Assembly (NCBI RefSeq): GCF_963853765.1
Contig: NC_088856.1
Span: 52,266,001-52,330,000, forward strand
Source: Magallana gigas
Taxonomy: Eukaryota
DNA: 64,000 nucleotides
Reading direction: 5' to 3'
Shown here: positions 43,971-63,911 of the stretch, piece after piece
Numbering within the stretch: position 1 is the first letter of the stretch
Layout of the letters: every line of letters begins with the position of its first letter
Made by a program: the position numbers and the translations under genes
Notes under the pieces: generated by a model
Seen by the model: only the letters and a program-made list of their open reading frames with translations
Databases searched by the model: none
What the model was told of the DNA's origin: nothing

Positions 43971-46900
43971 ATGCCAACAACATACAACTGCACGGACCCT
44001 GAAGCAGTGAATAAGGCTTACTATGTCGTGGTCAAGTCGTACTATGTTGACAGGGATCAGGTGTACTATATATGCTATGCCGACTATTCCATGAACGGGA
44101 GCCCCACCCTCACGTGTGACGGGGCCACGGGGAATTGGACGGGGAACTACCCCAAGTGTAGCTTGACCACCACCACCGTCACCACCACGACAACCACCCA
44201 GCCCTCAGACGGTAACTTTGAACTTTGAATATTGACCCCCTGTTTTCTTCTTGACCATGTATCTCTAAAGTTAATCATTCGTTAACTTTAATGGGCATGG
44301 TCGCGATCTCGGTCAAATTCTATTTTTCTGTTTTTATTATTTACAATGCTTTAGGAATGCATATCTCATGATCATGTTAAATTTGAGAGTCAGTCGTAGA
44401 GTTATAAGCAAGATACAGGGCTCACAATTCTTTGTCATGTAAACAAGACTCGTGCCCTGTTTTTGTTTTCATAGGTTCAGTATTACCGTAAAAAAAATTT
44501 GAGCTAATTTGTCTATCTCCGTATTCATCTTTAGCATAAATAAAGTGTTCCTAACATTTAACACATTCATTTTAGGTCTAAAAACTGGAATTCTCCCTTC
44601 AACATTTAAAATGTAAACAAAAGCTTTGTTTACCTAGCAAAAAATTTTAAGCTCCGTAACTCGTTTATAACTCAACGAACGACACTCAAATGTTGGTTGT
44701 CTATTAGAAATACCTCAATGAAGCATTGTAAACACTATAATGGAAAAAAATATATTTTGACAAAAATCGTGACCATACCCCTTTAAGGTAATTTTTGGGG
44801 GTTTTGTATTTGATGTATTTGTATTTTCAATAATATCTTATTCTTTTAAGATTACATATATAATGAATATTATAAATATCTGTAATATTATTTTAGTTCT
44901 TTAGAGCTAGGTCGATTGAACATTTTGAAATTGCTACGTTTTACTTTTAAATTTGTAAATTTATGCTTTCACTTTCGTTCCATGACTAGCTTTTTTCTCT
45001 TATATCTTAATTTTTTTATTATTAAGCACAACTTTATGAATAACCTTGTACATGTGTTGCTTTTTTAATTCTTTTCTTTAAAGTATTGCATGTTTAGTGT
45101 ATTGGGAAAGTTCTATAAAGGTTTAATATTTCAAAATTTAAAAAACAAACTCAAACGACTATATATAGATTATTTGTTGATGTATTTTCACCTGTGTAGT
45201 AAACAAAATCTACATTAAATGTCTCATTATACATGTATATCAAGAGAAATCACCGCAAAAGATGTTTATTATGTAGTCTCTAGAATATGACAAAAATGGT
45301 ATTCGAAAAAAATATTTCCACTTTTTTGAAAACATGTGAAAAATTGAAGTGAAAATAAGGAAAACAACAGTGAAATCAAAGTTATAGGTAACGCAACCCC
45401 AGCCCCCCATCCCACCCCCTCAGGACGGATAAGGATTTTGATTATTTGCACATTTTCAAATTTTAATTTATATTTTTCATTATAAGTAGTATTATTTTTT
45501 TGCTCGTCAAGATCTTTAAGACTGGCCCCCGCTTTCAAAAATGATGCTACGTACCTGAACTGGGATAGACAATACTATAATATGTTTTTCACCTGTTTAC
45601 AGACTGGCTATATGTTGGGGTCGGGCTGATGTCATTTCTAGCACTACTCTTCCTGCTGATTGTACTTCTTGCATGTATATTTCTATGTTACCGCCTATGC
45701 AGGTAAGAAAAGCTGTTTATTTATAGTTTCATAGAACAAGACCCATTTTTACTGGTTTTTTTTTTTGTTTTTTGTGTGGTTTTTTTTGGGTTTTTTTTTT
45801 TTTTTTTTTGTCTTTTATTTTTTTTTTTTTTGGTGGGGGGGGGGGAGGGGGGGGGGGGGTTAGTTGTAACCTTTTCAATGTGTTCGTACGATATGATTAA
45901 CTTTAAAAGAAATTTTATTAAGGAATATTCATTTCTTTTTACAATTTTGTGTAGCATTATTGTCCAACTTGAAACAGACTATAAAAATACTTTTAAGACT
46001 ATCTTACTTTTAATCGTAGGCAAGAATTTTTGTTAAGGAATTACAAACAGTATACAATCGTTTCTATGAAAAAAACAATGAGTTGCCAGGGTTACAAGTT
46101 CCTGGTTGAAACTAACTGAGGGGGAAATGAAATTAAAAGAGAAGCCTTTGAAAAAATATCAAAGAAAGTACATCTAAACAATATGATTGCTTGTTTTTGA
46201 AGTTGATGAAGGTATAAATTTGCAAACATTACAAAAATTACATAACCCGCCTTTGCATTTTAAACATAATGACATTCTTTAAGCAATAAGGAATCATTCT
46301 TTGAGTATTATGAGGTGATCAAATACGGTCGGGGAGATCAAATTCAGTAATGTCCGAAGGGTTTAAATGATCGATTTCATCACCTCGACCGTATTTGATC
46401 ACCTCCTATAATATTTTTATAGGATTGATTCCTTATTACTAGTATTCATATTTTTTAGCAATTGTATGATTATTATTAAAAATAGTCATTATGAAATGTA
46501 TTGGACTATACATTACAAAATCGGGTTGTGGTGTTATCATAGATAAAGACACATAGAAACTCGAGCGACTGTGCTGAAGAACTATCATCTTACCAGTTAA
46601 CATTGATCTCTACAGTGTATCGTTGTTAAAAAATTCACCCATGCTGAGAAACACATAGTATAAGATTCCATATATATGCATATATAAGACCAAATGTTTG
46701 TTTCCACTACTGTAAACATTGAAATTTTGCGGGGTAAAATGTTGCTATCTCTGCGTATCTTACTGTTATTTCAGGATCAAATTTTGTCCCAATAGCTAAT
46801 GAAAAAATATATCATTCATAATTTATGGAACACTCTTTTCGAAAATGATAACAAATGTTACCATGTTTACAACATCTCGATCACTTGCTAAACCCATACT

Positions 46901-47211
46901 CTTTCAGGAAACGGTCCAAAGTGAACGCTCTGCACGGGATCCAGGAACAGCTGGATGTCGGCTGCTGCTACGCGTGCTGCATGCGTTGTTGTCTGAAATG
47001 CTGCAGATGCTGTGCAGAAGATGATGACCTGAAAGGGAACCTCACCCCTCCACAGAGGGACACTTCCGTCTCCCCTTCGTCGGTTGTCCTTGACGACAGG
47101 TCGGGCTGGACACCAAAGACGATACGAAAAGAAGTCAAGCCCGCCAAGGAAATCACGGAGTGGAAACCGCACTCCAACCCGATGAGGAATATCAACACAA
47201 GTACAAAATAG
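43971..47211 (+). CDS. Sushi/CCP-domain single-pass membrane protein, paralog 1 (214 aa)
   Basis: Exons 43971-44211 (four-Cys CCP with V-Y-x-C, G...TC, G-x-W...P-K-C, then Thr stalk), 45603-45702 (TM) and 46908-47211 (Cys-rich tail). Phases 1 and 2. Confidence 0.86.
44288..44786. mobile_element. MITE flanked by TTAA (Kolobok- or piggyBac-type non-autonomous element)
   Basis: ttaa-tgggcatggtcgcgatc ... aaatcgtgaccatacccct-ttaa: imperfect ~19 bp TIRs with TTAA on both sides. Confidence 0.68.
46285..46437. mobile_element. ~150 bp palindromic element in Sushi-1 intron 2; a degenerate relative lies at ~18090-18225
   Basis: aataaggaatca...gaggtgatcaaatacggtcg mirrored by cgaccgtatttgatcacctc...tgattccttatt. 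Confidence 0.72.
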
Positions 47212-48770
47212 TGCTTCGAAGAATGACGTCACATAATCGAACACAAAGTGCCCGGATGACTGGACATTTACCGTCGTGATGTCATTACATGGACAATTTG
47301 GACATCGCATGATCGTGATCATTGACGCGAGATGATGTGAAGTTGAAGTTATCTGTAATTTTCTCTGCCAAAATCGATCAATTTTTTTATGATTAGATCG
47401 AGTGTGTACACTCTAGTGTTTTGTTTTATCAGTACGTCTTTTGTTTTATGTTTTACCAGTACATAATAACTAAGAATCCGTTTGAAATGGTTTTTATTCA
47501 CTGGAGTGCATTTTGTTCATGTTTTATGTCCCATATTGTCCTATACAAAAATGTTAATTCCTGTCCATCAGAATTTTGATTGTCAAGAAACAATGTCAAA
47601 TATAGAATTCATGAAAGATTGGGGTTTATTTTTGTAAAAGGATATTATATATATTTAAATCCTAGATGAGGAATCAAAGTATATTTGATATATCGGTAAA
47701 GCCTAAAACATTTTCATTTTGTATATGCACTGTACTGATTTCAGCGAGAGGTGTCAGACCTCATTTGTTATTAGTTGTTTGTCAAATACAACTTCTTTGT
47801 TAATTCGTGTTATGTGGTTCTGTTTTCTTCTGTTGGGGTTTATTTTTTTGGGGTGGGGGCGGGTGTTTTGTGGTTGGGGGTCGTATTTGTTTTTTTGTTT
47901 TTTTTAGGAGGGATGAGGGTATTTCTTTCAATTCTGCTTTCATTAAGGGTGATGGTGGGGGGGGGGGTGTGATTTTTGTGGATTTTAAATCAAGAATCGT
48001 AAAACGATTATCAGCTTAAGTTGTAAATGATAGCAGTTGGTCATCGTGACTGTAATGTAATTGTAAATAAATCGGCGAAACCGACAATTAAAGGCGCAAA
48101 AACGTCTTACTTAGAAAGATTCGGCCTTTGAGCCCATGTATATGGACTTCGGACCGCACGATAAGTCTGGCGATGTCTTAAAACTACTTAATGACCGTGC
48201 AATTAGGTAGATTGCACTGATTAATTTTATTTCAACTGACTTTATTGACTCTCAAATTAAATGGGTAACTGACAATTAAAGACTATATAAACTTTCTCCC
48301 AAAAACAAAGTAAGATATATTGAAGCTACAATTAACATATTTACATTGATTAGAGCATTAATTAATGGTCTACAGAGTGATATCATTGCGATTTTGTACG
48401 TGTTCATTAGAAATTGGAAAATGAAATCATTAGACAGGTTAGGTGTCTTAACCTTATGACCTTAATTATACATTTGTTGTTTTCGAAACAATTTTTGTTT
48501 CAACGTGTGCCAACTCACTACCTGTATTGATTGCACAGACTTACAGATAACAGCGTATAAAGACAGCATTGATAGCAGTGTCTCTTAAATTACATGTAAA
48601 CAGTTGTTTTAACTTTTGCGTGACAGTCAGTTTGATTTATGTTTTAAAATTGTACATTTGACAAACAGTGCTATTATTTTCCCTGCTATACTGACATTTG
48701 AATTGTTAAATTACAAAAAATGGGCAGTCACACCGAACACTTTAAAGAAATTATTTTCACTCTCAATATA

Positions 48771-62763: not shown

Positions 62764-63670
62764 CCATGACATTTGTGTAAGGCTAGAATGTCAAGGACAC
62801 TTGATTGGACACGGCAAAACAAGGAACCAAATGTAGCGATCATACATGTACTTTAATATTCTGTTTTTTCATAACACGATCATCTGAAACTGACTTGTCC
62901 TGTTCATTAGACAATTGTGGTGTTTATCAGAAGAAAAGGATAACAAGTTGAGAGGACTGCGATTTTTCACATTCAAATCATTACTATACATAATTCCTCA
63001 TCTTAACAGTCACAATACAACAAAATGCACTGAATAGTTACAATACACATTAAAATGTGCTTCGTATTGTCCTGTATTACCTAGTTCTTTACATAAATAA
63101 TCACACCTTTCCATTTTGCATGGACCATGTGGTACTTAAACAGATCCAGACTGTCAAGTTGCAATCATAATCCGCTGTATATGTTTAATGAAATTTACAG
63201 TCGGTCGTTTTCCTTCGCATAAATTGTTGTCATTAATATGGTCATGGCCATGTTTTATTACTGCGTTGAAAATCAATCAATTAATTTACTCAACATTGGT
63301 ATGCCTCTTATGATCACTAATTTTTTTATGAATAAAAAGTTAAAATCTTTAGTAGTTTTATTCTTAATGAAAATATATATACAATTTAGATTGAACTCCT
63401 TATCCCAAAGGACGAATCCACAGTCTAATTAAACGATTTGGGATTTTGTTCTTGGTTCATCTAAAAAGGTCAACTGTTATTACTAAACAGTTTAAAAGGA
63501 TACTGTTTCAACCTGTCAAACAGATATAAATCTTACATACAGCGTTAACCCGTTGCTGGCATTCTCCCCTCGAGCTAAGCGACCAACAAACGTTACAACG
63601 CGGTTTTTGCGGGGCCTTGGAATTTTTTGATTAATGTCTCAAAAACGAATATTTATCCAAACTACATCAA

Positions 63671-63911
63671 ATGCAACCGTGCAGCTCCCCTCCCTCAGTA
63701 ACAAACGGGTTCTTTGTGATCGCCAAAGGATCGTACTCTAATGGGGACCAGATCAGTTACTACTGCAAGATGGGATACGAGCTGACCGGAACAGCAACAA
63801 GGTCATGTGACGGAGCGACTGGTGCGTGGAGCGGATCCACCCCGAAATGCACCGCGGCGACCACGATAGCTTCCGTTACCACAACTACAGAGTCCCCATC
63901 CCAAATTACAG
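63671..63911 (+). CDS. Sushi/CCP-domain protein, paralog 4, first coding exon (gene truncated by window end)
   Basis: MQPCSSPPSVTNGFFVIAKGSYSNGDQISYYCKMGYELTGTATRSCDGATGAWSGSTPKC, then a Thr-rich stalk, ending in a phase-1 donor G|GTAGG. Confidence 0.82.

Follow-up and report, generated by a model that had tools for sequence, protein, structure and literature searches.

A tandem cluster of apparently signal-peptide-less, single-Sushi membrane proteins with predicted type III topology in the oyster Magallana gigas

We analyzed a 64,000-nt stretch of the genome of the oyster Magallana gigas (contig NC_088856.1 of assembly GCF_963853765.1, forward-strand positions 52,266,001 to 52,330,000; hereafter the window), in which four co-oriented three-exon genes on the + strand, here called P1 to P4, encode small membrane proteins that begin with a single Sushi (CCP) domain. 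We are fairly confident that these are four real genes, expressed or conserved, whose single-pass, Sushi-first products of 213-224 amino acids (aa) carry no signal peptide, are predicted to adopt a type III topology and descend from a gene that lost its signal-peptide exon. The transcripts of P2, P3 and P4 encode no signal peptide, and homology suggests the same for P1. Sequence features make an N-out/C-in (type III) orientation probable.

Each gene follows one plan, in which the first exon encodes the Sushi domain and a Thr-rich stalk, the second the transmembrane (TM) helix and the third a tail with a string of Cys residues (Table 1). The exon models thus bear out the architecture that the original prediction, made from the DNA sequence alone, had assigned to four co-oriented paralogues. 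The exon 1 donor is in phase 1 in all four genes. The TM exon is entered in phase 1 and left in phase 2, and it measures exactly 100 nt in P1-P3, as had been proposed, and 103 nt with the same phases in P4. The spliced open reading frames (ORFs) are intact and encode 214 aa (P1), 224 aa (P2) and 213 aa (P3), the P4 protein having 223 aa; the spliced P3 model is identical to XP_011420104.3. First-to-last Sushi Cys spans 43989-44159 in P1, 50165-50335 in P2, 61725-61895 in P3 and 63680-63850 in P4, and whole-length identity between paralogues is 29-49%. Both assembly gaps lie outside coding sequence (Table 1), and no reading frame crosses either of them. A spliced P2 RNA contig passes directly from 53257 to 54350 across the first gap, keeping the frame and adding no sequence, and the 3′ end of P2 reaches at least 54787.

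All four reading frames open at a Met placed 3-6 residues ahead of the first Sushi Cys (MPTTYNC, MSAYNC, MAAYNC and MQPC in P1-P4), and an in-frame stop lies 5-13 codons upstream of it in every gene, as originally described. For P2, a Logan RNA contig of 1,003 nt (L004), from which both introns are spliced out, is collinear with 49911-50375, so that 239 nt precede the ATG; all three frames are closed by stops in this stretch. The corresponding protein (P0001) starts MSAYNC. RNA contigs of P3 and P4 come from three studies. Those of P3 have their 5′ ends at 61550, 61550 and 61532, with zero depth farther upstream, and those of P4 start at 63573, 63580 and 63599, their loose end past 63911 matching the next exon. 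Mapping of RNA reads for P3 and P4, which covered 59700-64000 in four runs, gave no depth at 59700-60419. The only within-gene joint reported was the GT..AG joint of P3 intron 2 (62139/62141 to 62455/62457, in three runs); the joint between P3 exon 1 and the TM exon is masked in the mapping by a skipped CCA repeat and is carried by the contigs. Overall, the contig 5′ ends of P2, P3 and P4 lie 98-239 nt upstream of the ATG, are unspliced there and contain in-frame stops, and no upstream exon joined to any of these contigs was seen. AT-rich TATA-like boxes are present ~15-50 nt upstream of the three transcript 5′ ends. The original prediction had named an upstream coding exon as one of the findings that would count against it; the transcripts of P2-P4, whose 5′ ends are proximal, hold stops and join to nothing upstream, show no such exon. 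P1 has an in-frame TGA nine codons upstream, and the start assigned to it follows the model of its Saccostrea echinata orthologue, LOC133187530. Hydropathy profiles show one peak per protein, the TM helix, and N-terminal windows reach at most 0.66 on the Kyte-Doolittle scale, with nothing signal-like. We also considered a common leader exon serving all four units, as in a variable-exon cluster, and discarded the idea, as every unit comes with a 5′ end and a stop codon of its own.

The same start Met is present in RefSeq models of Ostrea edulis, Crassostrea virginica, S. echinata, S. cucullata and M. angulata, and Gnomon models in four oyster genera contain no upstream leader exon. In the pearl oyster Pinctada imbricata, three tandem genes start at the same Met, 2-5 residues ahead of the first Cys in all of them, with a stop 2-3 codons upstream in two. 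When exon 1 of M. gigas P2 was compared with that of its O. edulis orthologue, the proportions of nonsynonymous and synonymous differences were 0.118 (pN) and 0.80 (pS), giving a pN/pS of 0.15 that is a ratio of proportions and not a proper dN/dS, as synonymous sites are saturated. The 240 nt upstream of the P2 ATG were no more similar between the two species than shuffled sequence. Thus, in this comparison, constraint begins at the ATG.

The Sushi domain (Pfam PF00084) was recognized in P1-P3 with 42.6-48.4 bits against a cutoff of 20.7 (E = 7.9e-11 for P1), and P4 fits the Sushi Cys pattern. Four Cys (C6, C34, C48 and C62) and one Trp (W55) are invariant in 15 aligned sequences. An AlphaFold2 model places a CCP beta-sandwich with strands over residues 15-64 (predicted local distance difference test score ~80), followed by a helix (75-108) and a tail that is disordered, and its CCP part superposes on CCPs of beta-2-glycoprotein 1 and factor H with a root-mean-square deviation (rmsd) of 1.7-2.3 Å over 60-62 residues. 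The N-terminal domain is acidic (net charge 0 to -9) and contains little Lys or Arg. N-glycosylation sequons at N5/6 and N54/55, noted earlier in paralogues 1-3, are indeed kept there and in their orthologues, and are absent from P4. The uncharged TM span is 25-31 residues long (25-29 in P1-P3; 29 in P1) and is flanked by a net charge of -1 to -3 on the N side and +1 to +6 on the C side. Subtracting the N-flank from the C-flank charge gives +6 to +8 for P1-P3 and +2 for P4, whose flanks are weakly biased (N -1, C +1).

On the predicted cytoplasmic side, a string of 7-10 Cys in ~17-22 residues begins ~16-23 residues past the TM helix and is, by analogy, probably S-acylated (palmitoylated). The P1 tail, for example, combines a basic juxtamembrane stretch, 10 Cys in 17 residues and a C-terminal WKPH...RNINTSTK, and P1-P3 all end in -N-x-S-T-K/R/N. 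No Pfam family matched the tail, and the genes are annotated either as "uncharacterized protein" or under automatic names such as "seizure 6-like protein 2" and "lev-9-like"; membership of a well-characterized family, the other finding that would have counted against the original prediction, did not emerge. Two further observations concern the C termini. The last residues of P4 and its orthologues are -LSDI or -LSDL, fitting the class I PDZ-ligand pattern (S/T-x-hydrophobic-COOH). The stop codon of P3 (62761-62763) is polymorphic: the reference and RefSeq allele ends ...NNQSTN, and RNA-derived proteins (P0175, P0177, P0184 and P0192-P0194) read through it into a 31-aa extension, the full-length readthrough proteins having 243-244 aa.

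These features suggest how the proteins may be oriented. According to Wahlberg and Spiess (1997; PMC2139883), the N terminus is directed to the exoplasmic side when the apolar span is long and the C-terminal flank is the more positive one, and an unfolded N-tail permits its translocation. A census of human proteins that counted 304 single-pass type III proteins found the same determinants. P1-P4 all have such a span and flank, the charge bias being weak in P4. We propose that the single long hydrophobic helix would act as a reverse signal anchor. As a CCP needs two disulphides, the domain should stay unfolded in the cytosol, and the acidic N-tail could then pass the endoplasmic reticulum (ER) membrane before being oxidized and glycosylated (at the N5 and N54 sequons and the Thr stalk). 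The basic juxtamembrane stretch, the putatively palmitoylated Cys string and the disordered tail with its W-x-P-H...R-x-x-N-x-S-T motif would be left in the cytosol.

To trace the history of the family, we examined its relatives. Searched with a profile, a set of 1.84 billion representatives yielded members from oysters, Pinctada and the abalone genus Haliotis; multi-Sushi proteins dominated the matches. A search with the abalone protein returned only Haliotis and one with the tail profile only oysters, blanks that are no evidence of absence elsewhere in molluscs. An AlphaFold Database cluster search added no informative relatives, and a literature search on the LOC, XP and UniProt identifiers of the family found nothing. 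The family is restricted to molluscs and is of a kind of membrane protein already known.

The Haliotis homologues (XP_071082078.1, XP_048244623.1 and one H. asinina protein) resemble the oyster proteins in having one CCP, a TM exon entered in phase 1 and left in phase 2 (106 nt versus 100), a juxtamembrane Cys cluster and a C-terminal motif, WMPHS.PVRPINTSTK, identical to that of the oyster family. They differ in having a classical N-terminal signal peptide, a longer stalk, a tail spread over two exons and no N5/N54 sequons. In the H. cracherodii genome, the signal peptide has an exon to itself, which ends in phase 1 and lies 8.6 kb upstream of the Sushi exon; the Sushi exon likewise ends in phase 1, and the 106-nt TM exon ends in phase 2. 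The shared exon phases make homology of gene structure clear. Mollusc relatives carrying the TM-plus-tail region, for which the original prediction had suggested searching, do exist, but the lack of a signal peptide does not extend to the abalone members: it is absent from all oyster and Pinctada members and present only in Haliotis. Because the abalone homologues carry a separate signal exon, it is most likely, judging from gene structure, that this exon was lost in the lineage to oysters and pearl oysters.

In a phylogenetic tree, P1/P2, P3 and P4 each group with orthologues from other genera, and the P4 type pairs with one Pinctada gene. This grouping indicates a stable cluster of old origin and speaks against recent expansion. 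The P. imbricata scaffold VSWD01000005.1 holds at least three tandem members within ~52 kb (regions L008/L009; L009 13310-13480), so the tandem arrangement is older than the oyster/pearl-oyster split. The description of the family as "lineage-expanded" is an overstatement: a search of the 564-Mb M. gigas genome found only these four members, and the cluster has one-to-one orthologues across oysters. The ancestor was probably an ordinary type I protein with its signal peptide on its own phase-1 exon, much as in abalone. In the oyster/pearl-oyster lineage, the signal exon would then have been lost and a start codon and promoter gained at the Sushi exon, followed by tandem duplication of the gene before the oyster genera diverged. 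We lean slightly toward a stronger version of this scenario, namely an ancient natural conversion from type I to type III through signal-exon loss, preserved by purifying selection in every paralogue of oysters and pearl oysters, with the whole CCP and stalk translocated signal-free and the residue-5 sequon perhaps serving as a glycan lock on the N-out state.

Several points weigh against a signal-free, N-out origin of these proteins. The RNA evidence consists mostly of assembled contigs with undefined cap sites, raw-read depth being ~1x, and for P1 no transcript was found, nor a full-length transcript or protein in protein searches. Upstream ATGs are present in the 5′ untranslated regions (5′UTRs) of P2 (49911-50149), P3 (61532-61709) and P4 (63573-63670). 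P3 has four of them, including one at 61624 that opens a 46-codon upstream ORF overlapping the main start out of frame, and in one P3 allele (P0183) an indel brings an upstream ATG in frame, adding ~29 aa that are not signal-like; translation control by upstream ORFs is possible. The N-tail that would be translocated, 74-81 aa ahead of the uncharged span, exceeds the <50 aa typical of clients of the insertase EMC and falls into the "intermediate" length class, which either Sec61 or an insertase may handle. The direction of change (loss in oysters versus gain in abalone) is read from one outgroup genus and general knowledge of CCP proteins, and the topology, the glycosylation and the palmitoylation are predictions from sequence.

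These points give some room to other explanations. We think it improbable, though not negligibly so, that the signal peptide is indeed missing and the Sushi domain stays untranslocated, wholly or in part, in an N-in (type II) or mixed orientation with the Sushi domain cytosolic. An N-tail of ~75-80 residues is long for signal-independent translocation, and P4, with its weak charge bias, also lacks sequons. However, the CCP fold depends on two disulphides and its four Cys and Trp are invariant under strong purifying selection; the flank charge difference of 6-8 and the TM span of 25-29 residues in P1-P3 both favor N-out; the abalone homologue shares the TM and tail, and its signal peptide dictates an N-out orientation; and an N-in orientation would leave a basic stretch and a string of 10 Cys facing the lumen. 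The invariant Cys and Trp, the sequons conserved in P1-P3 and the signal-bearing abalone homologue all point to an extracellular site of action for the domain.

It is less plausible still that the oyster genes encode ordinary type I proteins that draw on a distant signal-peptide exon through an alternative promoter in unsampled tissues or stages. The abalone homologue has just such an exon 8.6 kb away. The mapped reads covered no more than 1.8 kb of sequence ahead of P3, rare isoforms are lost from contigs, and P1 contributes no RNA evidence. Nevertheless, an acceptor for such an exon would have to fall between the in-frame stop and the Met, and no such joint occurred in the four runs. The Met itself is kept in every orthologue and paralogue across five genera, a constraint that would not be needed if the exon were internal; the sequence upstream of the ATG is unconserved and the Gnomon models of four genera include no distant signal exon. 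The idea that the models are artefacts or decaying, functionless copies truncated from a larger multi-Sushi gene draws on the dominance of multi-Sushi proteins in the profile search and on automatic names hinting at larger relatives. It is already contradicted by intact ORFs, canonical splice sites, spliced mRNAs in several studies, one-to-one orthologues across oyster genera, the pN/pS given above and a family-specific tail motif conserved out to abalone, and we give it hardly any credence.

The overall architecture is not unprecedented. The nearest whole-length matches among structural models and features are vertebrate SUSD3 and SUSD6, in which a single CCP is likewise followed by a short stalk, one TM helix and a cytoplasmic tail that is disordered. 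Foldseek aligned the oyster model with mouse SUSD6 (residues 39-274 of 302) and mouse SUSD3 (29-245 of 269) over the whole length, and also with SUSD4 from its last CCP onward. The SUSD3/SUSD6 scores (TM-score 0.22-0.28, rmsd 26-29 Å over the whole length) mark a likeness at the level of architecture only. The nearest ESM-Atlas feature cluster was "SUSD3 protein (Fragment)", with a score of 0.90. No similarity to SUSD3 or SUSD6 was detected outside the CCP domain, SUSD3 having been compared by structure and features and not by sequence alignment, and none of the 150 profile matches listed was a vertebrate protein with the oyster tail. SUSD3 has ~28 residues ahead of its domain versus 3-6 in the oyster proteins. 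SUSD3 is reportedly annotated without a signal peptide; the literature searched held no statement on this point.

BCMA and TACI, type III proteins with small Cys-rich ectodomains, share with the oyster proteins the lack of a cleavable signal, a short N-terminal ectodomain and a single long, positive-inside TM helix. Ectodomain folds of type III examples are nonetheless unrelated (the TNFR Cys-rich domain, or mucin-like), making this a working analogy and not homology. SEZ6L2 and LEV-9, the sources of the automatic names, are multi-domain proteins that bear signal peptides (CUB plus several CCPs, and many CCPs, respectively), and the names reflect CCP similarity only.

Since the genes are already in RefSeq as uncharacterized and type III proteins are common, our results amount to a note on annotation and evolution more than a surprise: a tidy but not unprecedented case. 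If the predicted topology is true, an extracellular, disulphide-bonded domain would still reach the cell surface after loss of its signal peptide, with the abalone homologue, which kept it, as a matched control. The abalone/oyster pair could then become a comparative system for asking how long an N-tail may be, and how far it may fold, and still be translocated without a signal, and would be useful in work on the choice that the ER makes between Sec61 and an insertase when an N-tail is of intermediate length. Any prediction of the secretome or surfaceome that relies on a signal peptide would misplace the family. As single-CCP surface proteins with putatively palmitoylated tails, its members could be recognition or adaptor molecules.

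Table 1. Exons of the four single-Sushi genes and assembly gaps (window positions unless marked L006)
Feature	Position	Strand	Remarks
P1 exon 1, coding part	43971-44211	+	Met, Sushi, Thr stalk, phase-1 donor
P1 TM exon	45603-45702	+	100 nt; phases 1 and 2; AG/GT borders
P1 tail exon to stop	46908-47211	+	Own-genome tail match, E = 2.7e-16
P2 exon 1	49911-50375	+	Unspliced 5′UTR of at least 239 nt, ATG 50150, Sushi, stalk; RNA contig L004
P2 exon 1, coding sequence	50150-50375	+	
P2 TM exon	53158-53257	+	100 nt; phases 1 and 2
Assembly gap	53635-53762		Inside P2 intron 2
P2 last exon	54350-54787	+	Tail coding sequence 54350-54698, then 3′UTR
Assembly gap	59478-59635		Intergenic, between P2 3′ end and P3 transcript start (61532)
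P3 (LOC105322895) exon 1	61532-61944	+	5′UTR from ~61532-61550, ATG 61710, Sushi, stalk
P3 exon 1, coding sequence	61710-61944	+	
P3 TM exon	62042-62141	+	100 nt; phases 1 and 2; RNA pieces 62041-62139
P3 last exon	62457-63305	+	Tail coding sequence 62457-62763, then 3′UTR
P4 (LOC105322885) exon 1	63573-63911	+	5′UTR, ATG 63671, Sushi, stalk; RNA contigs
P4 exon 1, coding sequence	63671-63911	+	Spliced at 63911 to TM exon past window end
P4 TM exon	L006 1140-1242		103 nt; phases 1 and 2; past window end
P4 tail	L006 1643-1969		Past window end

Other features of the window include a repeat of ~270 bp at 60536-60810, between P2 and P3, that resembles a miniature inverted-repeat transposable element (MITE). 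A search of the M. gigas genome gave >1000 first-look candidates, and 40 scored copies with ~88-94% identity were found on every chromosome, with inverted matches of ~57 bp at the copy ends that are consistent with terminal inverted repeats. High RNA depth and loose ends at this repeat are due to copies embedded in other transcripts. The highly covered stretch 60300-61000 drew no match in an Rfam scan and is the MITE. The intervals between the genes also contain a 108-118-bp tandem repeat around long (TC)n runs (48774-49462, between P1 and P2) and 22-bp GCGAAG-type minisatellites in two inverted blocks (56416-57379, between P2 and P3).

Upstream of the cluster, ORFs of a Gypsy-type retrotransposon (gag/protease, reverse transcriptase, RNase H and integrase) occupy 19894-25376 on the - strand. 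They are followed at 27437-40448 on the + strand by tandem C1q-domain-like ORFs (e.g., 27437-27808, 34040-34360, 36577-37011 and 40098-40448), each preceded by a coiled-coil-like exon, in an arrangement typical of the expansion of C1q domain-containing genes in bivalves.

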